A stretch of 64,000 nt of DNA, from NCBI RefSeq assembly GCF_039654945.1, contig NW_027361804.1, positions 6,510,001-6,574,000 of the forward strand, written 5' to 3'. This document shows positions 13,650 through 59,295 of this stretch, one piece after another. A model generated the notes under the pieces. That model worked only from the letters and a program-made list of their open reading frames with translations. It was not told where the DNA came from and did not search any database. Every line of letters begins with the position of its first letter. Within the stretch, counting starts at the first letter, position 1. This DNA comes from Dendrobates tinctorius. Lineage: Eukaryota. The position numbers were made by a program, and so were the translations under genes.

Positions 13650-15645
13650 GTATCTAATCCAAGTGTGTGATATTGGCTGCTGAGCCGTGTACCTAATCCT
13701 CTCCTGTGTGATACTGACTGCTGAGCCGTGTATCTAAACCTATCGTGTGTAATACTGTCTGCTGAGCCGTGTATCTAATCCTCTCCTCTTTGATACTGAC
13801 TGCTGAGCCGTGTATCTAATCCTCTCCTGTGTGATACTGACTGCTGAGTCGTGTATCTGATCCTATCCTGTGTGATACTGACTGCTGAGCCGTGTATCTA
13901 ATCCTCTCCTGTGTGATACTGACTGCTGAGCCGTGTATCTAATCCTCTCCTGTGTGATACTGACTGCTGAGCCGTGTATCTGATCCTATCCTGTGTGATA
14001 CTGACTGCTGAGCCGTGTATCTAATCCTATTCTGTGTGATACTGACTGCTGAGCCGTGTATCTAATCCTCTCCTGTGTGATACCGACTGCTGAGCCGTGT
14101 GTCTAATCCTCTCCTGTGTGATACTGACTGCTGAGCTGTGTATCTAATCCTCTCCTGTGTGATACTGACTGCTGAGCCGTGTATCTAATCGTATCCTGTG
14201 TGATACTGACTGCTGAGCCATGTATCTGATCCTATCCTGTGTGATACTGACTGCTGAGCCGTGTATCTAATCCTCTCCTGTGTGATACTGACTGCTGAGC
14301 CGTGTATCTAATCCTCTCCTGTGTGATACTGACTGCTGAGCCGTGTATCTGATCCAATCCTGTGTGATACTGACTGCTGAGCCGTGTATCTAATCCTATT
14401 CTGTGTGATACTGACTGCTGAGCCGTGTATCTAATCCTCTCCTGTGTGATACCGACTGCTGAGCCGTGTGTCTAATCCTCTCCTGTGTGATACCGACTGC
14501 TGAGCCGTGTATCTAATCCTCTCCTGTGTGATACCGACTGCTGAGCCGTGTGTCTAATCCTCTCCTGTGTGATGCTGACTGCTGAGCCGTGTATCTAATC
14601 CTATTCTGTGTGATATTGACTGCTGAGCAATGTATCTAATCCTATCCTGTGTGATACTGACTGCTGAGCAATGTATCTAATCCTATCCTGTGTGATACTG
14701 ACTGCTGAGCCGTGTATCTAATCCTCTCGTGTGATACTGACTGCTGAGCCGTGTATCTAATCCTCTCCTGTGTGATACCGACTGCTGAGCCGTGTGTCTA
14801 ATCCTCTCCTGTGTGATACTGACTGCTGAGCCATGTATCTAATCCTATTCTGTGTGATACTGACTGCTGAGCAATGTATCTAATCCTATCCTGTGTGATA
14901 CTGACTGCTGAGCCGTTTATCTAATCCTATCCTGTGTGATACTGACTGCTGAGCCGTGTATCTAATCCTCTCCTGTGTGATACTGACTGCTGAGCCGTGT
15001 ATCTAATCCTATCCTGTGTGATACTGACTGCTGAGCCGTGTATCTAATCCTATCCTGTGTGATACTGACTGCTGAGCCGTGTATCTAATCCTCTCCTGTG
15101 TGATACTGACTGCTGAGCCATGTATCTAATCCTATTCTGTGTGATACTGACTGCTGAGCAATGTATCTAATCCTCTCCTGTGTGATACTGACTGCTGAGC
15201 CATGTATCTAATCCTATCCTGTGTGATATTGACTGCTGAGCCGTGTATCTAATCCTCTCCTGTGTGATACTGACTGCTGAGCCGTGTATCTAATACTCTC
15301 CTGTGTGATACTGACTGCTGAGCTGTGTATCTAATCCTCTCCTGTGTGATACTGTCTGCTGAGCCGTGTATCTAATCCTATCCTGTGTGATACTGACTGC
15401 TGAGCCGTGTATCTAATCCTCTCCTGTGTGATACTGACTGCTGAGCTGTGTATCTAATCCTCTCCTGTGTGATACTGACTGCTGAGCTGTGTATCTAATC
15501 CTCTCCTGTGTGATACTGTCTGCTGAGCTGTGTATCTAATCCTCTCCTGTGTGATACTGTCTGCTGAGCTGTGTATCTAATCCTCTCCTGTGTGATACTG
15601 ACTGCTGAGCCGTGTATCTAGTCCTATCCTGTGTGATACTGTCTA
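13650..15645 (+). repeat. 41-bp tandem array (CTGCTGAGCCGTGTATCTAATCCTCTCCTGTGTGATACTGA), ~48 copies
   Basis: Direct periodicity; in intron 1. Confidence 0.97.
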
Positions 15646-16186: not shown

Positions 16187-19100
16187 ACAGGGGTACAGGA
16201 GCACATTAGAGGGGCACAGGTAGGGTGTATGGGTACAGGACATTAGAGGGGCACAGGTAGGGTATATGGGTACAGGAGTACATTAGAGGGGCACAGGTAG
16301 GGTATATGGGTACAGGAGTACATTAGAGGGGCACAGGTAGGGTGTATGGGTACAGGACATTAGAGGGGCACAGGTAGGGTATATGGGTACAGGAGTACAT
16401 TAGAGGGGCACAGGTAGGGTATATGGGTACAGGAGTACATTAGAGGGGCACAGGTAGGGTGTATGGGTACAGGACATTAGAGGGGCACAGGTAGGGTATA
16501 TGGGTACAGGAGCACATTAGAGGGGCACAGGTAGGGTGTATGGGTACAGGAGTACATTAGAGGGGCACAGGTAGGGTATATGGGTACAGGAGTACATTAG
16601 AGGGGCACAGGTAGGGTATATGGGTACAGGAGCACATTAGAGGGGCACAGGTAGGGTGTATGGGTACAGGAGTACATTAGAGGGGCACAGGTAGGGTATA
16701 TGGGTACAGGAGTACATTAGAGGGGCACAGGTAGGGTGTATGGGTACAGGAGTACATTAGAGGGGCACAGGTAGGGTGTATGGGTACAGGAGTACATTAG
16801 AGGGGCACAGGTAGGGTATATGGGTACAGGAGTACATTAGAGGGGCACAGGTAGGGTGTATGGGTACAGGACATTAGAGGGGAACAGGTAGGGTGTATGG
16901 GTACAGGAGTACATTAGAGGGGCACAGGTAGGGTGTATGGGTACAGGAGCACATTAGAGGGGCACAGGTAGGGTATATGGGTACAGGAGTACATTAGAGG
17001 GGCACAGGTAGGGTATATGGGTACAGGAGTACATTAGAGGGGCACAGGTAGGGTATATGGGTACAGGAGTACATTAGAGGGGCACAGGTAGGGTGTATGG
17101 GCACAGGAGTACACTAGAGGGGCACAGGTAGGGTGTATGGGTACAGGACATTAGAGGGGCACAGGTAGGGTGTATGGGTACAGGAGTACATTAGAGGGGC
17201 ACAGGTAGGGTGTATGGGTACAGGAGTACATTAGAGGGTTACAGGTAGGGTGTATGGGCACAGGAGTACACTAGAGGGGCACAGGTAGGGTGTATGGGTA
17301 CAGGAGCACATTAGAGGGGCACAGGTAGGGTGTATGGGTACAGGACATTAGAGGGGCACAGGTAGGGTGTATGGGTACAGGAGCACATTAGAGGGGCACA
17401 GGTAGGGTGTATGGGTACAGGAGTACATTAGAGGGGCACAGGTAGGGTATATGGGTACAGGAGTACATTAGAGGGGCACAGGTAGGGTGTATGGGTACAG
17501 GAGTACATTAGAGGGGCACAGGTAGGGTGTATGGGTACAGGAGTACATTAGAGGGGCACAGGTAGGGTATATGGGTACAGGAGTACATTAGAGGGGCACA
17601 GGTAGGGTGTATGGGTACAGGACATTAGAGGGGAACAGGTAGGGTATATGGGTACAGGACATTAGAGGGGCACAGGTAGGGTATATGGGTACAGGAGCAC
17701 ATTAGAGGGGCACAGGTAGGGTGTATGGGTACAGGAGTACATTAGAGGGGCACAGGTAGGGTATATGGGTACAGGAGTACATTAGAGGGGCACAGGTAGG
17801 GTATATGGGTACAGGACATTAGAGGGGCACAGGTAGGGTATATGGGTACAGGAGCACATTAGAGGGGCACAGGTAGGGTGTATGGGTACAGGAGTACATT
17901 AGAGGGGCACAGGTAGGGTATATGGGTACAGGAGTACATTAGAGGGGCACAGGTAGGGTGTATGGGTACAGGAGTACATTAGAGGGGCACAGGTAGGGTG
18001 TATGGGTACAGGAGTACATTAGAGGGGCACAGGTAGGGTATATGGGTACAGGAGTACATTAGAGGGGCACAGGTAGGGTGTATGGGTACAGGAGTACATT
18101 AGAGGGGCACAGGTAGGGTGTATGGGTACAGGACATTAGAGGGGCACAGGTAGGGTATATGGGTACAGGAGCACATTAGAGGGGCACAGGTAGGGTGTAT
18201 GGGTACAGGAGTACATTAGAGGGGCACAGGTAGGGTATATGGGTACAGGAGTACATTAGAGGGGCACAGGTAGGGTGTATGGGTACAGGAGTACATTAGA
18301 GGGGCACAGGTAGGGTGTATGGGTACAGGAGTACATTAGAGGGGCACAGGTAGGGTATATGGGTACAGGAGTACATTAGAGGGGCACAGGTAGGGTGTAT
18401 GGGTACAGGACATTAGAGGGGAACAGGTAGGGTGTATGGGTACAGGAGTACATTAGAGGGGCACAGGTAGGGTGTATGGGTACAGGAGCACATTAGAGGG
18501 GCACAGGTAGGGTATATGGGTACAGGAGTACATTAGAGGGGCACAGGTAGGGTATATGGGTACAGGAGTACATTAGAGGGGCACAGGTAGGGTGTATGGG
18601 TACAGGAGCACATTAGAGGGGCACAGGTAGGGTGTATGGGTACAGGACATTAGAGGGGCACAGGTAGGGTGTATGGGTACAAGAGCACATTAGAGGGGCA
18701 CAGGTAGGGTGTATGGGTACAGGAGTACATTAGAGGGGCACAGGTAGGGTGTATGGGTACAGGACATTAGAGGGGCACAGGTAGGGTATATGGGTACAGG
18801 AGTACATTAGAGGGGCACAGGTAGGGTGTATGGGCACAGGAGTACACTAGAGGGGCACAGGTAGGGTGTATGGGTACAGGAGCACATTAGAGGGGCACAG
18901 GTAGGGTGTATGGGTACAGGACATTAGAGGGGCACAGGTAGGGTGTATGGGTACAAGAGCACATTAGAGGAGCACTGGTAGGGTGTATGGGTACAGGAGT
19001 ACATTAGAGGGGCACAGGTAGGGTGTATGGGCACAGGAGTACACTAGAGGGGCACAGGTAGGGTGTATGGGTACAGGACATTAGAGGGGTACAGGTAGGG

Positions 19101-22100
19101 TATATGGGTACAGGAGCACATTAGAGGGGTACAGGTAGGGTGTATGGGTACAGGAGCACATTAGAGGGGTACAGGTAGGGTATATGGGTACAGGAGCACA
19201 TTAGAGGGGTACAGGTAGGGTATATGGGTACAGGAGCACATTAGAGGGGTACAGGTAGGGTATATGGGTACAGGAGTACATTAGAGGGGCACAGGTAGGG
19301 TGTATGGGTACAGGAGCACATTAGAGGGGCACAGGTAGGGTATATGGGTACAGGAGTACATTAGAGGGGTACAGGTAGGGTATATGGGCACAGGAGTACA
19401 CTAGAGGGGCACAGGTAGGGTGTATGGGTACAGGACATTAGAGGGGCACAGGTAGGGTGTATAGGTACAGGACATTAGAGGGGTACAGGTAGGGTATATG
19501 GTTACAGGAGCACATTAGAGGGGCACAGGTAGGGTGTATGGGTACAGGAGCACATTAGAGGGGCACAGGTAGGGTGTATGGGTACAGGAGTACACTAGAG
19601 GGGCACAGGTAGGGTGTATGGGTACAGGAGTACACTAGAGGGGCACAGGTAGGGTATATGGGTACAGGAGTACATTAGAGGGGTACAGGTAGGGTATATG
19701 GGTACAGGAGCACATTAGAGGGGCACAGGTAGGGTGTATGGGTACAGGACATTAGAGGGGCACAGGTAGGGTGTATGGGTACAGGACATTAGAGGGGTAC
19801 AGGTAGGGTATATGGGTACAGGAGCACATTAGAGGGGTACAGGTAGGGTGTATGGGTACAGGAGTACATTAGAGGGGCACAGGTAGGGTATATGGGTACA
19901 GGAGCACATTAGAGGGGCACAGGTAGGGTGTATGGGTACAGGAGCACATTAGAGGGGCACAGGTAGGGTGTATGGGTACAGGACATTAGAGGGGCACAGG
20001 TAGGGTGTATGGGTACAGGAGTACACTAGAGGGGAACAGGTAGGGTATATGGGTACAGGACATTAGAGGGGCACAGGTAGGGTATATGGGCACAGGAGCA
20101 CATTAGAGGGGCACAGGTAGGGTGTATGGGTACAGGAGCACATCAGAGGGGTACAGGTAGGGTGTATGGGTACAGGACATTAGAGGGGCACAGGTAGGGT
20201 GTATGGGTACAGGAGCACATTAGAGGGGCACAGGTAGGGTGTATGGGTACAGGAGTACACTAGAGGGGCACAGGTAGGGTATATGGGTACAGGACATTAG
20301 AGGGGCACAGGTAGGGTATATGGGCACAGGAGCACATTAGAGGGGCACAGGTAGGGTGTATGGGTACAGGAGTACATCAGAGGGGTACAGGTAGGGTGTA
20401 TGGGTACAGGACATTAGAGGGGCACAGGTAGGGTATATGGGTACAGGAGCACATTAGAGGGGCACAGGTAGGGTGTATGGGAACAGGAGCACATTAGAGG
20501 GGCACAGGTAGGGTGTATGGGTACAGGAGTACACTAGAGGGGTACAGGTAGGGTATATGGGCACAGGAGCACATCAGAGGGGTACAGGTAGGGTGTATGG
20601 GTACAGGACATTAGAGGGGCACAGGTAGGGTATATGGGCACAGGAGCACATTAGAGGGGCACAGGTAGGGTGTATGGGTACAGGAGCACATTAGAGGGGT
20701 ACAGGTAGGGTGTATGGGTACAGGACATTAGAGGGGCACAGGTAGGGTGTATGGGTACAGGAGTACACTAGAGGGGCACAGGTACGGTATATGGGTACAG
20801 GACATTAGAGGGGCACAGGTAGGGTATATGGGCACAGGAGCACATTAGAGGGGCACAGGTAGGGTGTATGGGTACAGGAGCACATCAGAGGTGTACAGGT
20901 AGGGTGTATGGGTACAGGACATTAGAGGGGCACAGGTAGGGTGTATGGGTACAGGAGCACATTAGAGGGGCACAGGTAGGGTGTATGGGTACAGGAGTAC
21001 ATCAGAGGGGTACAGGTAGGGTGTATGGGTACAGGACATTAGAGGGGCACAGGTAGGGTATATGGGCACAGGAGCACATTAGAGGGGCACAGGTAGGGTG
21101 TATGGGTACAGGAGCACATTAGAGGGGCACAGGTAGGGTGTATGGGTACAGGAGTACACTAGAGGGGCACAGGTAGGGTATATGGGTATAGGACATTAGA
21201 GGGGCACAGGTAGGGTATATGGGCACAGGAGCACATTAGAGGGGCACAGGTAGGGTGTATGGGTACAGGAGCACATTAGAGGGGCACAGGTAGGGTGTAT
21301 GGGTACAGGAGTACACTAGAGGGGTACAGGTAGGGTATATGGGTACAGGAGTACATCAGAGGGGTACAGGTAGGGTGTATGGGTACAGGAGTACACTAGA
21401 GGCGCACAGGTAGGGTGTATGGGTACAGGAGTACACTAGAGGCGCACAGGTAGGGTGTATGGGTACAGGAGTACATTAGAGGGGCACAGGTAGGGTATAT
21501 GGGTACAGGAGCACATTAGAGGGGCACAGGTAGGGTGTATGGGTACAGGAGTACATTAGAGGGGCACATGTAGGGTATATGGGTACAGGAGTACATTAGA
21601 GGGGCACAGGTAGGGTGTATGGGTACAGGAGTACATTAGAGGGGCACAGGTAGGGTATATGGGTACAGGAGTACACTAGAGGCGCACAGGTAGGGTGTAT
21701 GGGTACAGGAGTACATTAGAGGGGCACAGGTAGGGTGTATGGGTAAAGGAGCACATTAGAGGGGCACAGGTAAGGTGTATGGGTACAGGAGTACATTAGA
21801 GGGGCACAGGTAGGGTATATGGGTACATGAGTACATTAGAGGGGCACAGGTAGGGTATATGGGTACAGGAGCACATTAGAGGGGCACAGGTAGGGTGTAT
21901 GGGTACATGAGTACATTAGAGGGGCACAGGTAGGGTGTATGGGTACATTACATTAGAGGGGAACATGTAGGGTATATGGGTACAGGAGTACATTAGAGGG
22001 GCACAGGTAGGGTATATGGGTACAGGAGCACATTAGAGGGGCACAGGTAGGGTGTATGGGCACAGGAGTACACTAGAGGGGCACAGGTAGGGTGTATGGG

Positions 22101-25100
22101 TACAGGACATTAGAGGGGCACAGGTAGGGTGTATAGGTACAGGACATTAGAGGGGTACAGGTAGGGTATATGGTTACAGGAGCACATTAGAGGGGCACAG
22201 GTAGGGTGTATGGGTACAGGAGCACATTAGAGGGGCACAGGTAGGGTGTATGGGTACAGGACATTAGAGGGGCACAGGTAGGGTGTATGGGTACAGGAGT
22301 ACACTAGAGGGGCACAGGTAGGGTGTATGGGTACAGGAGTACACTAGAGGGGCACAGGTAGGGTATATGGGTACAGGAGTACATTAGAGGGGCACAGGTA
22401 GGGTATATGGGTACAGGAGCACATTAGAGGGGCACAGGTAGGGTGTATGGGTACAGGACATTAGAGGGGCACAGGTAGGGTGTATGGGTACAGGACATTA
22501 GAGGGGTACAGGTAGGGTATATGGGTACAGGAGCACATTAGAGGGGTACAGGTAGGGTGTATGGGTACAGGAGTACATTAGAGGGGCACAGGTAGGGTAT
22601 ATGGGTACAGGAGCACATTAGAGGGGCACAGGTAGGGTGTATGGGTACAGGAGCACATTAGAGGGGCACAGGTAGGGTGTATGGGTACAGGACATTAGAG
22701 GGGCACAGGTAGGGTGTATGGGTACAGGAGTACACTAGAGGGGCACAGGTAGGGTATATGGGTACAGGACATTAGAGGGGCACAGGTAGGGTATATGGGC
22801 ACAGGAGCACATTAGAGGGGCACAGGTAGGGTGTATGGGTACAGGAGCACATCAGAGGGGTACAGGTAGGGTGTATGGGTACAGGACATTAGAGGGGCAC
22901 AGGTAGGGTGTATGGGTACAGGAGCACATTAGAGGGGCACAGGTAGGGTGTATGGGTACAGGAGTACACTAGAGGGGCACAGGTAGGGTATATGGGTACA
23001 GGACATTAGTGGGGCACAGGTAGGGTATATGGGCACAGGAGCACATTAGAGGGGCACAGGTAGGGTGTATGGGTACAGGAGCACATTAGAGGGGCACAGG
23101 TAGGGTGTATGGGTACAGGAGTACATCAGAGGGGTACAGGTAGGGTGTATGGGTACAGGACATTAGAGGGGCACAGGTAGGGTATATGGGTACAGGAGCA
23201 CATTAGAGGGGCACAGGTAGGGTGTATGGGTACAGGAGCACATTAGAGGGGCACAGGTAGGGTGTATGGGTACAGGAGTACACTAGAGGGGTACAGGTAG
23301 GGTATATGGGCACAGGAGCACATCAGAGGGGTACAGGTAGGGTGTATGGGTACAGGACATTAGAGGGGCACAGGTAGGGTATATGGGCACAGGAGAACAT
23401 TAGAGGGGCACAGGTAGGGTGTATGGGTACAGGAGCACATTAGAGGGGTACAGGTAGGGTGTATGGGTACAGGACATTAGAGGGGCACAGGTAGGGTGTA
23501 TGGGTACAGGAGTACACTAGAGGGGCACAGGTAGGGTATATGGGTACAGGACATTAGAGGGGCACAGGTAGGGTATATGGGCACAGGAGCACATTAGAGG
23601 GGCACAGGTAGGGTGTATGGGTACAGGAGCACATCAGAGGTGTACAGGTAGGGTGTATGGGTACAGGACATTAGAGGGGCACAGGTAGGGTGTATGGGTA
23701 CAGGAGCACATTAGAGGGGCACAGGTAGGGTGTATGGGTACAGGAGTACATCAGAGGGGTACAGGTAGGGTGTATGGGTACAGGACATTAGAGGGGCACA
23801 GGTAGGGTATATGGGCACAGGAGCACATTAGAGGGGCACAGGTAGGGTGTATGGGTACAGGAGCACATTAGAGGGGCACAGGTAGGGTGTATGGGTACAG
23901 GAGTACACTAGAGGGGCACAGGTAGGGTATATGGGTATAGGACATTAGAGGGGCACAGGTAGGGTATATGGGCACAGGAGCACATTAGAGGGGCACAGGT
24001 AGGGTGTATGGGTACAGGAGCACATTAGAGGGGCACAGGTAGGGTGTATGGGTACAGGAGTACACTAGAGGGGTACAGGTAGGGTATATGGGTACAGGAG
24101 TACATCAGAGGGGTACAGGTAGGGTGTATGGGTACAGGACATTAGAGGGGCACAGGTAGGGTGTATGGGCACCAGAGCACATTAGAGGGGGACAGGTAGG
24201 GTGTATGGGTACAGGACATTAGAGGGGCACAGGTAGGGTGTATGGGTACAGGAGTACACTAGAGGGGTACAGGTAGGGTATATGGGTACAGGAGTACATC
24301 AGAGGGGTACAGGTAGGGTGTATGGGTACAGGACATTAGAGGGGCACAGGTAGGGTGTATGGGTACAGGAGTACACTAGAGGGGTACAGGTAGGGTATAT
24401 GGGTACAGGAGTACATCAGAGGGGTACAGGTAGGGTGTATGGGTACAGGACATTAGAGGGGCACAGGTAGGGTGTATGGGTACAGGAGTACACTAGAGGG
24501 GTACAGGTAGGGTATATGGGTACAGGAGCACATTAGAGGGGGACAGGTAGGGTGTATGGGTACAGGACATTAGAGGGGCACAGGTAGGGTGTATGGGTAC
24601 AGGAGTACACTAGAGGGGTACAGGTAGGGTATATGGGTACAGGAGCACATTAGAGGGGCACAGGTAGGGTGTATGGGTACAGGAGTACACTAGAGGGGTA
24701 CAGGTAGGGTATATGGGTACAGGAGTACATCAGAGGGGTACAGGTAGGGTGTATGGGTACAGGACATTAGAGGGGCACAGGTAGGGTGTATGGGTACAGG
24801 AGTACACTAGAGGGGTACAGGTAGGGTGTATGGGTACAGGAGCACATTAGAGGGGGACAGGTAGGGTGTATGGGTACAGGACATTAGAGGGGCACAGGTA
24901 GGGTGTATGGGCACAGGAGTACATTAGATGGGCAAAGGTAGGGTGTATGGGTACAGGACATTGGAGGGGCACAGGTAGGGTGTATGGGCACAGGAGTACA
25001 TTAGAGGGGCACAGGTAGGGTATATGGGTACAGGAGTACATTAGAGGGGCACAGGTAGGGTATATGGGTACAGGAACACATTAGAGGGGGACAGGTAGGG

Positions 25101-27485
25101 TGTATGGGTACAGGACATTAGAGGGGCACAGGTAGGGTATATGGGCACATGAGTACATTAGAGGGGTACAGGTAGGGTATATGGGCACATGAGTACATTA
25201 GAGGGGTACAAGTAGGGTATATGGGTACAGGAGTACACTAGAGGGGCACAGGTAGGGTGTATGGGTACAGGAGTGCACTAGAGGGGCACAGGTAGGGTAT
25301 ATGGGTACAGGAGCACATTAGAGGGGCACAGTTAGGGTGTATGGGTACAGGACATTAGAGGGGCACAGGTAGGGTATATGGGCACATGAGCACATTAGAG
25401 GGGCACAGGTAGGGTGTATGGGTACAGGAGCACATTAGAGGGGTACAGGTAGGGTATATGGGCACATGAGTACAATAGAGGGGTACAGGTAGGGTATATG
25501 GGTACAGGAGTACACTAGAGGGGCACAGGTAGGGTGTATGGGTACAGGAGTACACTAGAGGGGCACAGGTAGGGTGTATGGGTACAGGAGCACATTAGAG
25601 GGGCACAGGTAGGGTGTATGGGTACAGGAGTACATTAGAGGGGTACAGGTAGGGTATATGGGCACATGAGTACATTAGAGGGGTACAGGTAGGGTATATG
25701 GGTACAGGAGTACACTAGAGGGGCACAGGTAGGGTGTATGGGTACAGGAGTACACTAGAGGGGCACAGGTAGGGTATATGGGTACAGGAGCACATTAGAG
25801 GGGCACAGGTAGGGTGTATGGGTACAGGAGCACATTAGAGGGGCACAGGTAGGGTGTATGGGTACAGGAATACATTAGAGGGGCACAGGTAGGGTATATG
25901 GGTACAGGAGTACATCAGAGGGGCACAGGTAGGGTATATGGGTACAGGAGTACACTAGAGGGGCACAGGTAGGGTATATGGGCACATGAGTACATTAGAG
26001 GGGTACAGGTAGGGTATATGGGTACAGGAGTACATCAGAGGGGCACAGGTAGGGTATATGGGTACAGGAGTACATTAGAGGGGCACAGGTAGGGTATATG
26101 GACACATGAGTACATTAGAGGGGTACAGGTAGGGTATATGGGTACAGGAGTACACTAGAGGGGCACAGGTAGGGTATATGGGTACAGTAGCACATTAGAG
26201 GGGCACAGGTAGGGTGTATGGGTACAGGAGCACATTAGAGGGGCACAGGTAGGGTATATGGGTACATGAGTACATTAGAGGGGCACAAGTAGGGTGTATG
26301 GGTACAGGAGTACACTAGAGGCGCACAGGTAGGGTGTATGGGTACAGGAGTACACTAGAGGCGCACAGGTAGGGTGTATGGGTACAGGAGTACATTAGAG
26401 GGGCACAGGTAGGGTATATGGGTACAGGAGCACATTAGAGGGGCACAGGTAGGGTGTATGGGTACAGGAGTACATTAGAGGGGCACATGTAGGGTATATG
26501 GGTACAGGAGTACATTAGAGGGGCACAGGTAGGGTGTATGGGTACAGGAGTACATTAGAGGGGCACAGGTAGGGTGTATGGGTAAAGGAGCACATTAGAG
26601 GGGCACAGGTAAGGTGTATAGGTACAGGAGTACATTAGAGGGGCACAGGTAGGGTATATGGGTACATGAGTACATTAGAGGGGCACAGGTAGGGTATATG
26701 GGTACAGGAGCACATTAGAGGGGCACAGGTAGGGTGTATGGGTACATGAGTACATTAGAGGGGAACATGTAGGGTATATGGGTACAGGAGTACATTAGAG
26801 GGGCACATGTAGGGTGTATGGGTACAGGAGTACATTAGAGGGGCACAGGTAGGGTATATGGGTACAGGAGTACACTAGAGGGGCACAGGTAGGGTGTATG
26901 GGTACAGGAGTACATTAGAGGGGCACAGGTAGGGTGTATGGGTACAGGAGTACACTAGAGGCGCACAGGTAGGGTGTATGGGTACAGGAGTACATTAGAG
27001 GGGCACAGGTAGGGTATATGGGTACAGGAGTACACTAGAGGGGCACAGGTAGGGTGTATGGGTACAGGAGTACATTAGAGGGGCACAGGTAGGGTGTATG
27101 GGTACAGGAGTACACTAGAGGCGCACAGGTAGGGTGTATGGGTACAGGAGTACATTAGAGGGGAAGAGGTAGAGTATATGGGTACAGAGTACATTAGAGG
27201 GGCAGAGGTAGGGTATATGGGTTCAGGAGTACACTAGAGGGGCACAGGTAGGGTGTATGGGCACAGGAGTACATTAGAGGGGCAGAGGTAGAGTATATGG
27301 GTACAGAGTACATTAGAGGGGCACAGGTAGGGTATATGGGTACAGAGTACAGTAGGGGGGTAGAGGTAGAGTATATGGGTACAGGAGTACATTAGAGGGG
27401 CAGAGGTAGAGTATATGGGTACAGAGTACATTAGAGGGGCACAGGTAGGGTATATGGGTACAGGAGCACATAAGAGGGGCACAAG
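16187..27485 (+). repeat. 11.3-kb G-rich 37/40-bp satellite (GGGTACAGGAGTACATTAGAGGGGCACAGGTAGGGTRTAT), ~290 copies
   Basis: Direct periodicity with variant units; in intron 1. Confidence 0.98.
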
Positions 27486-27560
27486 TCAGGTATAGGGTGG
27501 GTTATGGGTGGCATCAGTCGGCGGGTTTGCGGATGTCTTATATAAGGGCACCAGTATGTA

Positions 27561-29464: not shown

Positions 29465-31345
29465 CACTACAACCCCCAACACGATCCAACCACTGGACAC
29501 GGCCGTACACTACAACCCCCAACACGATCCAACCACTGGACACGACCGTACACTACAACCCCCATGATCCAACCATTGGACACAACCGTACACTACAACC
29601 CCCAACACGATCCAACCACTGGACACGACCGTACACTACAACCCCCATGATCCAACCATTGGACACAACCGTACACTACAACCCCCAACATGATCCTACC
29701 ACTGGACACGACCGTACACTACAACTCCAAACATGATCCAACCACTGGACACGAACAAACACTACAACCTCCAACATGATCGGACCAATGGACACGACTG
29801 TACACTACAACCCCCAACATAGTCCGACCACTGAACATGACCGTACACAACCCCCAATATAGTCCGACCACTGGACATGACCGTACACAACCTCCAATAT
29901 AGTCCGACCACTGGACATGACCGTACATTACAACCCCCAACATGATCAGACCACTGGACACGACCGTACACTACAACCCCCAACATAGTCCGACCACTGG
30001 ATACGACCTTACACTACAACACCCAACATGATCAGACTACTGGACATGACCATACACTACAACCCCCAACATGATCAGACCACTGGACACGACCGTACAC
30101 CACAACACCCAACATGATCAGACCGCTGGACACGACCATACATTACAACCCCCAACATGATCCTACCACTGGACACAACCGTACACCACAACACCCAACA
30201 TGATACAACCACTGGACACGACCGTACCCCACAACACCCAACATGATCCGCCCACTGGACACGACTGCACATTACAACCCTCAACATGATCAGACCACTG
30301 GACACGACCACACATTACAACCCTCAACATGATCCGACCACTGGACACAACCATACACTACAACACCCAACATGATCCTACCACTGGACACGACCGTACC
30401 CCACAATACCCAACATGATCCGACCACTGGACACAACCATACACTACAACACCCAACATGATCCGACCACTGGACACGACCGTACCCCACAACACCCAAC
30501 ATGATCCGACCACTGGACACAACCATACACTACAACCCTCAACATGATCCTACCACTGGACACAACCGTACACCACAACACCCAACATGATACAACCACT
30601 GGACACGACCGTACCCCACAACACCCAACATGATCCGCCCACTGGACACGACTGCACATTACAACCCTCAACATGATCCGACCACTGGACACAACCATAC
30701 ACTACAACACCCAACATGATACAACCACTGGACATGACCGTACCCCACAACACACAACATGATCCGACCACTGGACACAACCATACACTACAACCCTCAA
30801 CATGATCCTACCACTGGACACAACCGTACACCACAACACCCAACATGATACAACCACTGGACATGACCGTACCCCACAACACCCAACATGATCCGCCCAC
30901 TGGACACGACTGCACATTACAACCCTCAACATGATCAGACCACTGGACACGACCACACACTACAACCCCCAACATGATGCGACCACTGGACACAACCGTA
31001 CACCACACCACCCAACATGATCCAACCACTGGACACGACCGTACCCCACAACACCCAACATAATCCTCCCACTGAACACGACTGCACATTACAACTCTCA
31101 ACATGATCCTACCACTGGATACAACCGTACACCACCCAACATGATCCAACCACTGGACACGACCGTACCCCACAACACCCAACATGATCCGCCCACTGGA
31201 CACGACCACACACTACAACCCTCAACATGATCCGACCACTGGACACAACCATACACTACAACCCTCAACATGATCAGACCACTGGACACGACCGTACACT
31301 ACAACCCCCCAACATGATCCAACCACTAGACACGACCACACACCA
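29465..31345 (+). repeat. 43-bp tandem array (CACTACAACCCCCAACATGATCCGACCACTGGACACGACCGTA), ~44 copies
   Basis: Direct periodicity; preceded by a few short GACAGCACAGACACACAACACG repeats at ~29310-29425. Confidence 0.95.
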
Positions 31346-32219
31346 CAATGCCCAATGTGGTAGAAAGTTGCACCATATAATGATATTTGGGGGACTGGCC
31401 CTTTAAATGTAACAAAATCAATAATTGACAATGAAGCGATGGCTCCAACACCCTGAGCTCTTAATCACTGCACCATCCTCCCGCTATAATCCAAGGGTTC
31501 GGTGCCAGGTCCAGTCTGTGTCCATCTGTCATGGGGCACCGGATTTTATAGGTGGTAATTATGACTATAACAGAAAACTAAGCCTCAAACAAGCAGAAAA
31601 GCCCCTTATGAGGGCAGAATGACAACAAGCTGGTACAGGAACCAGCAAAGCTGCAGTGTAAAGTATGAGGGAGCTGCCGCCTGATCCTATGATGAGACTG
31701 CAGCTGACACATTAGTGGCTATAACAGGACCTCAATGTAATTCTCTGTTTCCCCACCGGAGGCGCTGCAGAGTCTCCCACCTGGGTCACGGCAGATCACT
31801 GTGGTACTGATACTCCCATCGTCTCCTGCTGTGGAGCGCCATTACAGCGGCTGCTCCCTGGCGCTCAGCCCTGTCTGAGCTGTGAACTCGCACAACATTA
31901 AATCTTAATCTGTTTCCATTTTTGCAAAGTATCTTGGATGGTAATTATAAGGTATCACGGATCCTGTGGCGCCACTCCGAGAAAATAGTCATCATCTGTA
32001 ACCACTACAACTCCTAGTATTTCCTGACAGCCACACCATGAAGACTACTAGCCCAACAGTGTAAGTTCCATAGAGGCCCATGGCGGAGGGTCCCGATCCA
32101 CAACCACATCCCCTGCCTGCCCTGATGCTCATAGCAGTAACTGCTGCTGCCACTGAGGGGAGCTCAAGAGATTTATACACCTGCCAATGAATCTAATAAC
32201 AGCTGTATACATTCATGTA

Positions 32220-51625: not shown

Positions 51626-52386
51626 TAGCATGCATGTCCTATGTGATTGAGCGTGGTGCCCCCCACTGGCTGTGTGGTGGTACTGCGTTCCTGTGTCGCT
51701 GCTTCCTTGCATCCTTTGGCCGCTCCCTGTGCAGCGCTCCTGTCTGCCGCCTGTCACTATGATGTCCTCCCCCGTTCTGCACTCCGCCACCTGATCTCGG
51801 GCCGTTCCCTGTACACAAACCTCCTGGCGCTTTCATTACCTTTCAGTGTCTCATTAATAATTCAGCTCCTGCTCATCGGATGAATTGCCTTTGATTGCCC
51901 TGTATATTTTATGAGCCTCGCTGACACTTGTGATTTTTCCATGATCCGGGGCGAGGGCTTGGGTTGGGTTGCAGGATCCAGGGGGGATCCCGGAGGCAGC
52001 GAGCTCCTGGCTACCCCCCGAGGCACAGCCAGTTGCCTTTGTGTAATTCCCTTCCCGACCATCTGCTGTGGATCTACAACTCCCACAGTGTCCTCACTGC
52101 TGCCGACATCCTGGATGTTGTGGACTGTAGATGTCCAGGTGTCTTGTGCTCTCTGTTATCAGGACACTGCTGATCTGCATCAGAAGCTCATTCATGCTGA
52201 GGTGGCTGATGGCAGAGAGCAATGGCACACTCGTCTCTTCTACAGTCAGCTCCGTGCTGGTGATGGACTATGCTATATTTTATTCTCTAGTCACATCCAA
52301 AGCTGCAAGCAGCAGGGGATGCTGGGAGATTTCAGCTCCTGGTTAATATCTGAATCCTCACATCATGACTTTATTTTATCTGACAG

Positions 52387-52644
52387 AAAACTGAAGCATG
52401 GGAAAGTGAGAAGGAGGAAAGTGACATGGAGGAATACATCTGGGAGGGCAGCCGGTCGCAACAGAACATCCTGGACACGCTCTCCAGGATGCCGGGTAAC
52501 GCCGCCTCCAGCGAACAGATCCTCCAATCGCCCAGTGTGCAGGAATATCGCCGTGCCATGCTGAACCTGCGCAACCAGGGCGAGACTGAGGAAAGCATCA
52601 GCCTCTACAAGCAAAGTGTCAAGAGTCTACTGGGTGTGGCCTAA
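52387..52644 (+). CDS. MRPS35: MRPS35 exon 8 (last)
   Basis: KTEAWESEKEESDMEEYIWEGS...YKQSVKSLLGVA*; total CDS 954 nt, 317 aa. Confidence 0.93.
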   Translation, partial: KTEAWESEKEESDMEEYIWEGSRSQQNILDTLSRMPGNAASSEQILQSPSVQEYRRAMLNLRNQGETEESISLYKQSVKSLLGVA

Positions 52645-53705: not shown

Positions 53706-55167
53706 GTACAGCTATATGAGTGGATTGTGGCTGTGTTCCCGTGAGCTGGGGCTTTGATTTCGGGGTGGATTATGTGGCCTCTTTGTGATGTGAGATGGGA
53801 TAAAGGTCGTTGTGTAAGTTCGGGGCCTGGATTGCACCCATCACACTTTCATACGACACCTCGTAGCAGCTCCAATTTCTGCCACTGACTAAAAGCCTTA
53901 TGTGTTGATGGACGGTGGGGGGGGATAACAAACCTGCCTCGCTGTACGGCTGTTGGCTGTGTTGGACCATAAGTATGTGCACCCCCCCCCCCCTCCTCCT
54001 GTAATCGGTGGCTTTGCTTTCTATAAGCCTGAGATCATCGGACGCACAGCGTCAAGCGCCTGCTGCAGAAATGTAAAGCCACCAGAAGTTGGAAAGGAGG
54101 GAGTGTCCTGTAATTCTAGGACCCCCGACCCGGAGACTTGACCCTTTCCACGCCTGTCTCCTAGGATCATCCTTTGTGGGTGTTTGCCATAATCCCCGGG
54201 GGTCACGGCGCAGGTGACGTCGCCCATCTGATATAATTCTTGCTGTTGACCTCCTCCTAATCTGAGGACACAAAATCTCCATTTCTGGAGCGGATCCAGC
54301 TGCGGTGACCTTCACAGGCCGCTCCCCGAGCAAGAACCCAAACACGGCATCACAGAAGAATGGAGCCATTCTGCGAGACACCCCCCCTGACTAAGGGGAG
54401 GTGGAGGACGGGGGATACACTCATCGCATGGCACGGCAAACAGCTCAGCGCTGATGAGACAAGAAGTAGGAAATTCCTTTAATCCGACATCAATGGGATC
54501 TGTTGCTTTTCCAGATTATCAGACTTTCTGGATTATCAAATATATAACAGGTTAAAAAAGTGCATGTTTTTTAGGTTCTCTTCGCGCTGAAGGTGTGTGT
54601 GGACTTTTGCAACATGCTTTTTACGGCTCAGACAAAAAGCCAAATAGTCTTGATGAAAAATAAATCCGTTTTGTGTATACAGGCACCTAGAAAGGAGAAG
54701 GTGTGTATACTTTTGCTAACAAATCTGTTAGGTCTGCACAGGAGCTGTATACTCATGTGTCCTGTTCTTCCCCCGCAGAAGAATCACAGGACCCGAACTG
54801 CATCGGCATTATTTGTCGTCTGTTGCCGTGGAGACGCATCGCTCTCCCTTGGAGCTGTAGACGCAGAACGGTTGGAAACTTGTCATCAGGACTTTCGATG
54901 CTCTGTGCACTGGAATAGTAAAAAAAAAAACTGCAAAAGTATACGCACCCTGAAGTGTAAGGACAATGTTGCTGTTTTTTTTTGTTTTTTTTTAGGTGCA
55001 AACCTTTAATTATTGGCCCTGATGTCCAGGGGAAATGCTCATGAAGTGTCCTGCGGCTGCAGTGCTGGGGGTGCGGCTGCCTCGCCTGCAGGTAGTTTGG
55101 GGTCTGTCCGTTCCCTCACCTTTCAGTACTGGTATTATCCACCAGGGGGCGTATGGGTGCCCAAGCG

Positions 55168-55805
55168 TCAGTCCTTCTCCTTGAGCAGAGTGCAAGTAAT
55201 GAGGGTCCTTGTGCCGGTCATTGGTGCCCTCCAGGGCCGGTACCTCCCGCGCTGCCGCCTCCTACAGCACCCAAACGCCAGGACCCCCGAGCAGCAGCAC
55301 AATAGGGTCACCGTGGACCCGATCATGGTAGGAAGGGGCCAGAGATTGGCCCAGGTGTCTGCAGGGTCCTCGGTTTCCCCGTCGTATGTTTGGTTCCGGC
55401 CGCCGTGGCCCTTGGTTTCGTTCACGTGCTGTTTGCTGCTGTCCAGGTGCGCAGGGCTCTGCAGCTCCGGTCGATCCAGGGGCGGTGAGGACGGAGGGGC
55501 CTCCTTGTCGGGCAGCCTGGCTCCTTGGGGGAAGACCGGTGTCGTATCTTGAGCAGTGATTGGAGGAGAATAAGTAGGAGCTAAAGAGCGGAGAGGAGAG
55601 TCCGCCGGGGACGGGGGCTGGGGAGGAGGGGGCTGGGTTGCCGGCGGCTCATCATGTGGACTGGTGGGCAACGACTGAGGCTCCTTGGAGTGTCCGAGGG
55701 TCGGAGGCTCCCGGGATATGTTCAGACGCTCCCACTTCAGGGATGACCGAGGGTTCAGGTCGATCTGTCGCAGTTGATCGAATACCAGCAGATCGGGATC
55801 CACAC
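55168..55805 (-). CDS. MANSC4: MANSC4 last exon (Pro/Ser/Thr stalk, TM helix, basic tail)
   Basis: GVDPDLLVFDQ..., TM segment LPTMIGSTVTLLCCCSGVLAFGCC followed by RRRQRGRYRP; total 336 aa. Confidence 0.9.
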
Positions 55806-55959
55806 CTAAAGGGGAAACCAAATGGTCGTCAGCACATCTGAAGCTTAAGCAAATGACGCCGACTACAGAAGATGTTAGCTACTTCCTCTCTCTGTGAGAG
55901 CGAAACTGTGATTCGATTGCCTGGAAGAGTTAGTGGAGTCCCTCTGAGGTCTGCTATCG

Positions 55960-56905
55960 ACGACTTACCTGCTGTGAACGTGTAGAGGACACTGCAGTCT
56001 CGGAGCTGGAGGAGGAGAAGTTGGCTACTTCTATGGGGACGGGGGATGATCACTTACTGTGATTGCCGTGACGTGCGCTACGGACGACTTACCTGCTGTG
56101 ACCGTGTAGAGAACGCTGCGCTCTCAGAGCTGGAGGAGGAGAAGTTAGCTACTTCTCTCTATGGGGACGGGGAATGATCACTTACTGTGATTGCCGTGAC
56201 GCGTGCTACGGACGACTTACCTGCTGTGACCGTGTAGAGAACGCTGCGCTCTCAGAGCTGGAGGAGGAGAAGTTAGCTACTTCTCTCTATGGGGACGGGG
56301 GATGATCACTTACTGTGATTGCCGTGACGCGCGCTACGGACGACTTACCTGCTGTGACCGTGTAGAGAACGCTGCGCTCTCAGAGCTGGAGGAGAAGTTA
56401 GCTACTTCTCTCTATGGGGACGGGGGATGATCACTTACTGTGATTCCCGTGACGCGCGCTACGGACGACTTACCTGCTGTGACCGTGTAGAGAACGCTGC
56501 GCTCTCAGAGCTGGAGGAGGAGAAGTTAGCTACTTCTCTCTATGGGGACGGGGGATGATCACTTACTGTGATTGCCGTGACGCGCGCTACGGACGACTTA
56601 CCTGCTGTGACCGTGTAGAGAACGCTGCGCTCTCAGAGCTGGAGGAGGAGAAGTTAGCTACTTCTCTCTATGGGGACGGGGGATGATCACTTACTGTGAT
56701 TGCCGTGACGCGCGCTACGGACGACTTACCTGCTGTGACCGTGTAGAGAACGCTGCGCTCTCAGAGCTGGAGGAGGAGAAGTTAGCTACTTCTCTCTATG
56801 GGGACGGGGGATGATCACTTACTGTGATTCCCGTGACGCGCGCTACGGACGACTTACCTGCTGTGACCGTGTAGAGAACGCTGCGCTCTCGGAGCTGGAG
56901 GAGGC
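55960..56905 (-). repeat. 128-bp tandem array spanning the MANSC4 exon end and 5' splice site
   Basis: The donor (ACTTAC on +) recurs at 56852 (native), 56724, 56596, 56468, 56343, 56215, 56087 and 55963. Confidence 0.96.
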
Positions 56906-56992
56906 AGCTCTCGGGCTCGGGGCAGTGCACCAGGTGACAGTCTCCGCTCTCAGCGCTCGTCTCGGAGTAAAAGACGGCCACGTTGCACGAAT
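56858..56992 (-). CDS. MANSC4: MANSC4 second coding exon
   Basis: DSCNVAVFYSETSAESGDCHLVHCPEPESCLLQLRERSVLYTVTA; 135 nt, phase 1-1; CAG/GTAAGT. Confidence 0.92.
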
Positions 56993-57097
56993 CTGGGAAG
57001 ATAGGGTAGAAATGCGATTACGAAACGCAGCAGAGGGCTTGTTCCATGTGCGTGCGACCTGCGCTGACACACTGCAGCAGAAGTGCTCCTGCGTTAC

Positions 57098-57335
57098 CTT
57101 GGTGGCAGCACTTGTGGCTGCACTTTTGGGCGGAGGGCTCCGGACGCCTCAGTAACAGCCGGGCTCCGCGCTGCTCCGATCCGGAGAAACTGAGGACTAG
57201 TCCTGGGAAGCGTCTGATCCAGCAGCCATGGTAGAAGGCGGTGTGTGGGCACAGGGCGCTGGGCAGGGAGCAGATCCAGGGCACGTCCAGGAGGGAGAGG
57301 AGCAGGAGACTCACCGACTCCACACTCACTGCCAT
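57098..57335 (-). CDS. MANSC4: MANSC domain-containing protein 4, first coding exon
   Basis: Signal-peptide-like start, then LCPHTAFYHGCWIRRFPGL...KCSHKCCHQ (MANSC4-type CWIRRFPGL). Donor GTAACG. An upstream TAG acceptor at 57345-57347 implies a 5'UTR exon. Convergent with MRPS35, as in human. Confidence 0.9.
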
Positions 57336-57670
57336 CACCGGGGGCTATGGGGTGGGGGGTCCTACAGGGGGACAGGAAATGTATGGGGGTCTCAGAGCTG
57401 CAGCCAATCATCCGCTCAAACCTTCTAATACTTTGTGTTCCAATTCCTCTCCGTTCTCAGGATCTCTGCTTACCGTCACAACCCAGCAGCACAGGGGAGA
57501 CATTAGTGCTGCTGACGTGTATCATTGTCCAGATACAATTGTCACAAACCCTCAGCTGTGAGAAGGTTAGCTCAGGATGGGCTAATTGTGCTACAATGTA
57601 ATCACACGGCAAGTGGCGGGAAGTGTAAAATGCAGGAGACAAGGGTGTGAATATAGTGTTATAGTATCTA

Positions 57671-59295
57671 CAGTGGGTACGGAAAGTATTCAGACCCCTT
57701 TATATTTCTCACTCTTTGTTTCATTGCAGCCATTTGGTAAATTAAAAAAAAAGTTCATTTTTCTCATTAATGTGCACTCTGCACCCCATCTTCACTGAAA
57801 AAACCCCATAAATATAGAAATGTTTGCAAATTTATTAAAAAAAGAAATACTGAAATATCACATGGTCATAAGTATTCAGCCCCTTTGCTCAGACACTCAT
57901 ATGTAAGTCACATGCTGTCCATTTCCTTGTGATCCTCCTTGAGATGGTTCTACTCCTTCATTGGAGTCCAGCTGTGTGTAATTACACTGATAGGACTTGG
58001 TTTGTAAGGGCGCACACCTGTCTATATAAGACCTCACAGCTCACAGTGCATGTCACACCAAGTGAGAATCATGAGGCCAAAGGACCTGGCCAAGGAGCTC
58101 AGAGACAGAATTGTGGCAAGGCACAGATCTGGCCAACGTTACAAAATAATTTCTGCAGTACTCAAGGTTCCTAAGAGCACAGTGGCCTCCATAATCCTTA
58201 CTTGGAACAAGTTTGGGACCACCAGAAGTCTTCCTAGACCTGGCCACCGTCCAGCCAAACTGAGCAATCGTGGGAGAAGAGCCTTGGTGAGAAAGGTAAA
58301 GAAGACCCCCAAGATCACTGTGGTTGAGCTCCACAGATGCAGTAGGGAGATGGGAGAAAGTTCCACAAAGTCACCTATCACTGCAGCCCTCCACCAGTCG
58401 GGCCTTTAAGGCAGAGTGGCCCCACGGAAGCCTCTCCTCAGTGCCAGACACATGAAAGCTCCCATAGAGTTTGCTAAAAAAACACATGAAGAACTCCCAG
58501 ACTATGAGAAAAAAGATTCTCTGGTCTGAAGAGATGAAGAGAGAACTTTTTGGTGATAATTCTAAGCGGTATGTGTGGAGAAAACCAGGCACTGCTCATC
58601 ACCTGCCCAATACAATCCCAACAGTGATGCATGGTGGTGGCAGCATCATGCTATGGAGTTTGTTTTTCAGCTGCAGGGACAGGACGACTGGTTGCCATTG
58701 AAGGAAACATGAATGCGGCCAAGTATAGAGAGATCCTGGATGACAACCTCTTCCAGAGTGCTCTGGACCTCAGACTTGGCCGAAGGTTCACCGTCCAACA
58801 AGACAATGACCCTAAGCACACAGCGAAAATAACAAAGGAGTGGCTTCAGAACAACTCTGTGACCATTCTTGACTGGCCCAGCCAGAGCCCTGACCTAAAC
58901 CCAATTGAGCATCTCTGGAGAGACCTGAAAATGGCTGTCCACCAACGTTCACCATCCAACCTGACGGAACTGGAGAGGATCTGCAAGGAAGAATGGCCGA
59001 GGATCCCCAAATCCAGGGGTGAAAAACTTGCTGCATCATTCCCAAGAAGACTCATGGCTGTACTAGCTCAAAAGGTGCGTCTACTCAATACTGAACAAAG
59101 GGGCTGAAGACTTATGACCATGGGAGATTTCAGTTTTTCTTTTTTAATACATTTGCGAAAATTTCTACATTTCTGTTTTTTTCAGTCTAGAGGTGCAGAG
59201 TGTACAGTAATGAGAAAAAAATGGAAATTTTTTGCATTTACTAAATGTCTGCAATGAAACAGAGTGAAAAATGTAAATACTTTCCGTACCCACTT
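57671..59295 (+). mobile_element. Tc1 (DD34E) transposon, full length, degenerate
   Basis: TA|CAGTGGGTACGGAAAGTATT...AATACTTTCCGTACCCACTT|TA. Transposase from ATG 58071 is broken by a stop at 58407 and a frameshift. QQD-34 aa-E. Confidence 0.93.

Follow-up and report, generated by a model that had tools for sequence, protein, structure and literature searches.

Minisatellites that span an exon-intron boundary and repeat the splice donor inside the intron are known from several genes. In intron 7 of human F7, a variable number tandem repeat consists of 5-9 copies of a 37-base pair (bp) monomer (Borensztajn et al. 2006, PMC1557585); its first monomer straddles the boundary, the authentic donor is followed by identical pseudo-donors, and only the most upstream one is used in mRNA, a choice within runs of identical donors that was shown by 50 constructs (PMC1557585). 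As cited in the same paper, IFI6 (6-16) has 25 pseudo-sites in intron 2 and CBS has 15-20 repeats in intron 13, and in each gene two of them, the nearest pseudo-donors, are also used constitutively; by the same citation, only the authentic donor is used in LMNB2 (100-bp monomer, 10-15 copies) and in intron 4 of PDGF (81-bp monomer, 16-18 copies). Here we describe an array of this kind at the boundary of exon 2 and intron 2 of the gene for MANSC domain-containing protein 4 (MANSC4) in the frog Dendrobates tinctorius. It lies on the minus strand of a stretch of 64,000 nucleotides (nt), hereafter the window, which corresponds to positions 6,510,001 to 6,574,000 of the forward strand of contig NW_027361804.1 (NCBI RefSeq assembly GCF_039654945.1). 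The array belongs to the known class of boundary-spanning minisatellites (type of F7 intervening sequence 7), because it starts in an exon, the donor is reiterated in the intron and, at the level of transcript contigs, the upstream donor is mainly used.

Most likely the whole array is treated as intron and is a tolerated by-product of a minisatellite-prone genome, not a regulatory device. The RNA consisted of assembled contigs, the depth of which is unsuitable for quantification, from four runs and three organisms. Run X15 stems from organism D and agrees with the window without a mismatch; X1 and X3 come from organism A, which differs by about 2%, and X6 from organism B, which differs by about 6%. 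In all four runs the coding exons are linked by the joints 57098 to 56992 and 56858 to 55805, with GT..AG ends on the gene strand. The canonical junction 56858 to 55805 is the product seen and the sole junction across intron 2 in these contigs, none of which shows the ladder of multiples of 37 nt that an initial annotation, made from the letters of the window, had proposed to look for. It is pinned unambiguously to the authentic donor only by X1, X3 and X6, each of which has one contig that covers the three coding exons together. Neither a joint of about 91 nt inside the array nor a cassette between exons 2 and 3 was found in the contigs of the four runs, which represent abundant isoforms only.

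With respect to F7, copy number varies there within the species, and at MANSC4 the number and the unit length of the arrays differ between species, one assembly standing behind the count in D. tinctorius. The F7 monomer contains 4 nt of exon and no acceptor, and supplies pseudo-donors only, with the weak donor UGG|GUGGGU; the MANSC4 unit is 128 bp long and takes in 47 nt of exon, an AG with its pyrimidine tract and a perfect CAG|GTAAGT, and therefore repeats whole pseudo-exons. LMNB2 and PDGF are the closest in unit size, with long monomers that reiterate the donor and the authentic one alone reported as used, but they are other genes, in mammals, compared here through what PMC1557585 cites of them. 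IFI6 and CBS share the reiterated donor, as cited there, and differ in that no use of the nearest pseudo-donors was seen in the MANSC4 contigs.

Host gene and architecture of the array

On sequence identity the host gene is MANSC4, as the initial annotation had named it: exon 3 is 100% identical to D. tinctorius MANSC domain-containing protein 4 (XP_073400340.1), whose 336 amino acids (aa) equal the sum of the three canonically joined coding exons. The exons were searched one at a time against Pfam. Exon 2 alone matched profile positions 48-82 of 89 of MANEC (PF07502) with E 9.4e-4, a hit that falls short of the gathering score, and exons 1 and 3, searched singly, gave no match; full-length relatives carry PF07502, and the single C-terminal transmembrane (TM) stretch is conserved. 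The NCBI models of four dendrobatid species comprise the canonical protein only, with 331-336 aa. The features of the gene and of the array, all on the minus strand, are the following.

57098-57335, minus strand: MANSC4 coding exon 1, with ATG at 57335-57333 and ending in phase 1; contig pieces 57098-57363 in all four runs, joint 57098/56992, 100% match to XP_073400340.1
56858-56992, minus strand: MANSC4 coding exon 2, 135 nt, second half of the MANSC/MANEC domain; joints on both sides, Pfam MANEC
56852-56860, minus strand: authentic donor CAG|GTAAGT, 9/9 match to MAG|GTRAGT, most upstream of eight identical donors; sequence and RNA joint
55959-56904, minus strand: tandem array, period 128, 7.4 copies; Tandem Repeats Finder
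56730-56766, minus strand: pseudo-exon 1, 37 nt, beginning CTC TGA, preceded by AG and followed by GTAAGT; Hamming scan
56602-56638, minus strand: pseudo-exon 2; Hamming scan, with the unspliced X15 contig 56605-56757 passing donor 1 and acceptor 2
56474-56510, minus strand: pseudo-exon 3; Hamming scan
56349-56385, minus strand: pseudo-exon 4, pyrimidine tract 3 nt shorter (125-bp unit); Hamming scan
56221-56257, minus strand: pseudo-exon 5; Hamming scan
56093-56129, minus strand: pseudo-exon 6; Hamming scan
55969-56005, minus strand: distal, old pseudo-exon with 4-5 substitutions, CGA kept, without the second GTAAGT; Hamming scan, unit tree and unspliced X15 contig 55863-56036
55806-56857, minus strand: intron 2, 1052 nt, excised whole in the observed transcripts; joint "skips 1052, CT..AC (cut +2)" in X15, X1, X3 and X6
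55866-55890, minus strand: native copy of the GGAAGTAGCTAAC motif on the 3' side of the array, followed by ATCTTCTGTAG; sequence and homologous place in relatives
55168-55805, minus strand: MANSC4 coding exon 3, the last coding exon, which contains the TM helix (about 55264-55344) and the stop codon (55170-55168); joint-free contigs 54915-55803 and 54700-54930

Tandem Repeats Finder delimited the array at 55959-56904 with 96% matches (score 1752) and gave an equal score to a higher-order period of 381 bp. The first monomer straddles the boundary of exon 2 and intron 2, and the units follow head to tail from the exon into the intron. Each unit is composed of the last 47 nt of coding exon 2, the donor CAG|GTAAGT and about 81 nt of intron, and the start-to-start distances found in the repeat search are 128, 128, 125, 128, 128 and 128. 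Coding exon 2 ends ...CTCCTCCAG CTCCGAGAGCGCAGCGTTCTCTACACGGTCACAGCAG|GTAAGT at 56858, and the Hamming scan located 7 extra copies of its 37-nt end within intron 2, every one of them preceded by ...GCTAACTTCTCCTCC(TCC)AG and followed by the donor CAG|GTAAGTCGTC (7/7), with spacers of 91 nt (88 in one unit and 87 in another). The composition of the unit and its seven extra repeats, the formally complete 37-nt cassettes with both AG and GT, and the spacing of about 91 nt had all been described correctly in the initial annotation. So had the change CGA>TGA, which the scan placed in the six young copies (CTC TGA), CTC CGA being kept in the real exon and in the distal copy. The second GTAAGT attributed there to each unit is present after the real donor and after all six young pseudo-exons; there is none after the distal one. 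Both strands of the 64-kb window together contain 26 GTAAGT hexamers, and 15 of these sit in the 1052 nt of intron 2.

It was also observed that the CpG of the CGA codon (window 56890-56891) has mutated both ways, to TGA in the six young copies and, in organism A, to CAA (R>Q) within the real exon. Recursive splicing was rejected for D. tinctorius, since the AG is followed by CTCTGAG and not by a donor GT.

The 49-nt intronic part of the unit had 7 matches in the array, versus 0 in 100 shuffles, and none elsewhere in the 64-kb window. An origin of the unit from a dispersed repeat or transposon was ruled out, given that this intronic part occurs in the window only in the array and is homologous to the single-copy intron of relatives. 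The proximal, young units show 0-10 differences in 128 among themselves, and the distal unit about 67 from the young ones when gaps are counted. Units 1 and 4 have variants in common, and from these variants together with the 381-bp period we propose that a block of three units was probably duplicated within the D. tinctorius array.

Origin and decay of the array in relatives

The orthologous MANSC4 loci of six other frogs were compared with that of D. tinctorius, with the following numbers of extra copies of the exon end.

Dendrobates tinctorius (Dendrobatidae): 7 extra copies, six young and one old and distal
Phyllobates terribilis (Dendrobatidae): 7 extra copies, in units of 136-169 bp that are 77-89% alike; one donor deleted, two GTTAGT, two GTGAGC
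Ranitomeya imitator (Dendrobatidae): 5-7 extra copies, with 5 of full length and one zero-length unit, CCAG|GTAGGT; lengths of 31 and 36 nt, two acceptors lost
Ranitomeya variabilis (Dendrobatidae): 5 extra copies, one of them interrupted by a 1.2-kb insertion
Anomaloglossus baeobatrachus (Aromobatidae): 0 extra copies, a 23-mer minisatellite instead
Leptodactylus fuscus (outgroup): 0 extra copies, real exon end alone
Bufo bufo (outgroup): 0 extra copies, real exon end alone

The array is old and common to the Dendrobatinae sampled (Dendrobates, Ranitomeya and Phyllobates), and in two haplotigs of Phyllobates it has the same span. In a tree of the units, based on a short alignment and indicative only, the six young copies of D. 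tinctorius group with their own real unit, its distal copy groups with Phyllobates copies 6 and 7, and several Ranitomeya copies pair across R. imitator and R. variabilis. Most likely, the duplication arose once. It would predate the split of the genera Dendrobates, Ranitomeya and Phyllobates, and would be later than the aromobatid lineage or separate from it; the subsequent turnover of the array would have been independent in each lineage. The six near-identical copies of D. tinctorius probably represent a recent burst from the real exon/intron unit, the distal copy being presumably old and common with Phyllobates.

In Anomaloglossus, a 23-mer minisatellite, (CCCAGAGGAAGTAGCTATCTTCT)n, which has a higher order of 46/69 bp, occupies about 1.17 kb of intron 2 (locus L003:3626-4797). 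This 23-mer is built on GAAGTAGCTAAC-TTCTCC, a motif found at every unit boundary of the dendrobatid arrays and missing in the MANSC4 loci of Leptodactylus and Bufo. This near-palindromic motif (GAAGT-AGCTA-ACTTC) may be a hot spot of slippage. The initial annotation had regarded the tract GCTAAC-TTCTCCTCCTGCAG as a new junction. It proved to be native, as in Phyllobates and Ranitomeya the part of the intron that adjoins exon 3 has the sequence GTAGCTAACTTCTCCT(C/A)CTG(C/T)AG|TCG; because the same tract precedes exon 3 in these genera, the "acceptor" of the cassettes is native intron sequence resembling the CTGCCTCCTCCAG of the exon, and was not made by the duplication junction. The founding event was likely an unequal exchange or a replication slip between two pyrimidine motifs about 200 nt apart, the CTGCCTCCTCCAG of the exon and the GTAGCTAAC-TTCTCCTCCTGCAG of the intron, and the native motif at 55866-55890 would be the intronic partner in such an exchange.

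The cassette and its splice sites were not found to be conserved among the relatives: in Phyllobates donors have been lost or changed, and in Ranitomeya two acceptors have been lost and the pseudo-exons measure 0, 31, 36 or 37 nt. This decay of the copies and the variation of their lengths argue against a conserved device that adds multiples of 37 nt. About 6/7 of the extra copies in Phyllobates, and fewer in both Ranitomeya arrays, have both AG and GT, and roughly 60-77% intact copies are expected by chance at a divergence of about 12% per site. The pseudo-exon parts of the extra copies lie at a distance of about 9-12% from the slowly evolving real exon, which is about half of the distance of 23-30% between introns, as predicted by neutral decay from a fixed master.

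Some further traits of these loci were recorded. The zero-length unit of R. imitator (locus L007:1575-1615, at about 1600) lacks its pseudo-exon entirely, so that an acceptor directly abuts a donor (TTCTCCTCCTCCAG|GTAGGTCC), an arrangement like that of a recursive splice site. The insertion of about 1.2 kb that splits one pseudo-exon of R. variabilis (locus L008:1628-2860) starts with CAGGGGTGTCAAACTGCATTCC and resembles a transposon terminal repeat. In L. fuscus there are two unrelated tandem repeats in and upstream of the MANSC4 orthologue, a 50-mer present 4.9 times (L005:1259-1504) and a 66-mer present 8.4 times (L005:1-557), with the tail ...GTAACAAACCCTCAGC in common.

Splicing of intron 2 and alternative explanations

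In the mechanism that we propose, splicing uses the first of the eight identical donors (CAG|GTAAGT), that is, the one farthest upstream, joins it to the acceptor of exon 3 and skips the seven pseudo-exons. The first donor would be preferred in that it completes the normal 135-nt exon, and the choice of the upstream site would be the same as among the identical donors of human F7. With regard to the skipping, the pseudo-exons are probably too small for efficient exon definition. Exon definition works well only at sizes above 37 nt. The distance of just 16 nt between the branch-like A and the AG would be a further obstacle, and the doubt that the initial annotation itself had voiced about the use of the cassettes, on account of this short distance, was justified. 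As a weak contributing factor, a hairpin of 9 bp may enclose the branch motif together with the pyrimidine tract as far as its middle, with -8.6 kcal/mol versus -0.5 to -4.5 at the real acceptors, which are open; the value of the hairpin is no better than that of shuffles (z -1.07). Two repeat units fold with z -4.28. A stable RNA structure hiding the sites is kept as no more than a weak idea, given that the local hairpin does not exceed the shuffles.

Several observations weigh against reading the array as inert intron. By sequence the pseudo-acceptors look good (CUAAC, 12 pyrimidines, CAG). Introns of 91 nt can be spliced by intron definition, and the silence of the pseudo-exons is explained only by inference. 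It must be noted that assembled contigs lose rare isoforms, and inclusion of a cassette below roughly 5-10% would escape detection. Moreover, the junction contig of X15, the run with the same sequence as the window, has just 30 nt on its upstream side, identical in the real exon and in the six young pseudo-exons, and is compatible with the donor of any of them, and the canonical contigs of organisms A and B may stem from arrays of different copy number. Finally, the pseudo-exon parts of the extra copies are 81-88% alike and the intron parts 68-73%; this higher likeness may be due to gene conversion from the real exon or to alignment effects, and it could also hint at constraint.

Among the alternatives, the one that survives best, unlikely as we judge it, is that the seven pseudo-exons act as decoys, which bind U1 and U2AF/U2 without being included and tie up the terminal splice sites, so that intron 2 is removed slowly or retained and the output of MANSC4 falls as the copies rise. 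Every unit has splice sites of consensus strength, and the seven cryptic exons are unused in the contigs. The decoy model rests on unused cryptic exons within retained introns mostly longer than 1 kb (PMC6097662, PMC7373989), and intron 2, with 1052 nt, is of this size. The decoy exons of SF3B1 and OGT described in those papers are, like the MANSC4 pseudo-exons, unused cryptic exons with splice sites in an intron of about 1 kb or longer; however, they are single and conserved and have a demonstrated effect on retention, whereas at MANSC4 there are seven repeated copies that decay in relatives, and the effect is hypothetical. Unspliced X15 contigs were found in intron 2 (55863-56036 and 56605-56757), whereas intron 1 and the sequence immediately preceding the gene had none; this is at most a hint that intron 2 is unspliced or retained, as intron 1 measures only 105 nt, where low coverage would be lost, and contig depth is not quantitative. 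Besides, X1 and X3 (organism A) have no array contigs at 90% likeness or more, and the decay of the copies in the sister genera fits neutrality. It would be slightly less probable still that the array works as a copy-number-dependent decoy which, by holding U1/U2 on the pre-mRNA and delaying or blocking the removal of intron 2, makes the size of the minisatellite a heritable dial on MANSC4 output in dendrobatine frogs.

A 75-nt contig of X6 (organism B) was also noted, in which window 56080-56117 is joined to 56201 onward, skipping 83 nt with ends other than GT-AG. As a single short contig, it would imply a 45-nt unit, composed of about 25 nt of exon end and about 20 nt of intron, and organism B would then possess another donor-bearing repeat, shorter than the first.

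We consider it very improbable that cassettes are included in a regulated manner, with the frameshift leading either to nonsense-mediated decay (NMD) or to a secreted MANSC domain without the TM helix and with copy number as the tuner, as the initial annotation had suggested. The cassettes are formally complete, and its frame arithmetic was borne out when exon 3 was translated in each phase: inclusion of one cassette leads to a stop 49 codons into exon 3 and inclusion of two to a stop 16 codons into it, both through a shift of frame, while a third cassette begins CTC TGA and brings a TGA 31 nt before the last junction. As a rule, NMD acts on stops that precede the last exon junction by more than 50-55 nt. 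Stops at such a distance were not obtained with one to three cassettes, and would require four or more. No exon beyond exon 3 was seen in the transcript contigs, in which it continues unspliced into the 3' untranslated region for about 470 nt or more, reaching at least 54700, and no intron was seen in that region. From the reading frames, transcripts with one to three cassettes would thus escape NMD, the protein being truncated and the mRNA not "poisoned"; because their stops are situated either inside exon 3 or within 50 nt of the final junction, "poison exon", the label first given to these units, is wrong. The predicted product of inclusion is a truncated MANSC4 which keeps the MANSC domain and loses the TM helix, in agreement with the secreted form that had been envisaged, but the inclusion itself was not seen in the contigs. 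No cassette junction was present in the four runs of three organisms, the annotated models are canonical only, and the length and the splice sites of the cassette are not conserved in Ranitomeya or Phyllobates; a tuning of productive splicing by copy number is not upheld by these results. Furthermore, in the donor-bearing minisatellites cited in PMC1557585 splicing takes the upstream donor and, at most, the two pseudo-sites closest to it.

That the array or its copy number was mis-assembled from a shorter repeat can be dismissed almost entirely: the count rests on a single assembly of the species and short-read contigs collapse the young copies, but independent zero-mismatch X15 contigs lie inside the array, one crossing a unit-to-unit junction (56605-56757) and another covering the distal copy (55863-56036), so that the unit structure is not an invention of the assembly, and homologous arrays of similar extent exist in three other genomes and in both Phyllobates haplotigs.

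Surroundings of the gene and significance

On the 5' side, all transcript contigs depart from the sequence of the window at an acceptor at 57361-57363 (CCCCTGTAG|G), with 76-127 further letters that are not in 54700-57700, and therefore MANSC4 has at least one non-coding 5' exon farther upstream. Upstream of the gene, window 57528-57700 shows very high depth (hundreds to thousands) and many loose ends in all four RNA runs, and is probably an expressed dispersed repeat, and an open reading frame of a Tc1-like transposase lies at 58050-58409 on the plus strand. The last part of the adjoining gene, at about 52168-52644 on the plus strand, matches PF10213 (MRP-S28, a mitochondrial ribosomal protein). 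The region is very rich in tandem repeats, with three large minisatellites in the window, namely a strongly G-skewed 40-mer repeated 287 times (16191-27498, 11.3 kb), a 41-mer repeated 16 times (15000-15641) and a 43-mer repeated 44 times (29465-31355), which fits a minisatellite-prone genome.

A literature search on MANSC4 returned only mentions in proteome-association studies and omics screens, and nothing on its splicing. The knowledge of MANSC4 itself is unchanged by this work, and a regulation of the gene by the array is not supported. The array is a clean natural case of a known puzzle, in which eight identical, perfect donors and seven good-looking acceptors stand within 1 kb and one pair is chosen. 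In addition, it can be traced across four genomes as an old array with lineage-specific turnover, founded on a motif that has made another minisatellite in the sister family. In this regard, the MANSC4 arrays of these frogs provide a useful natural series for the rules of exon definition, the preference for the first donor and the effects of decoys.

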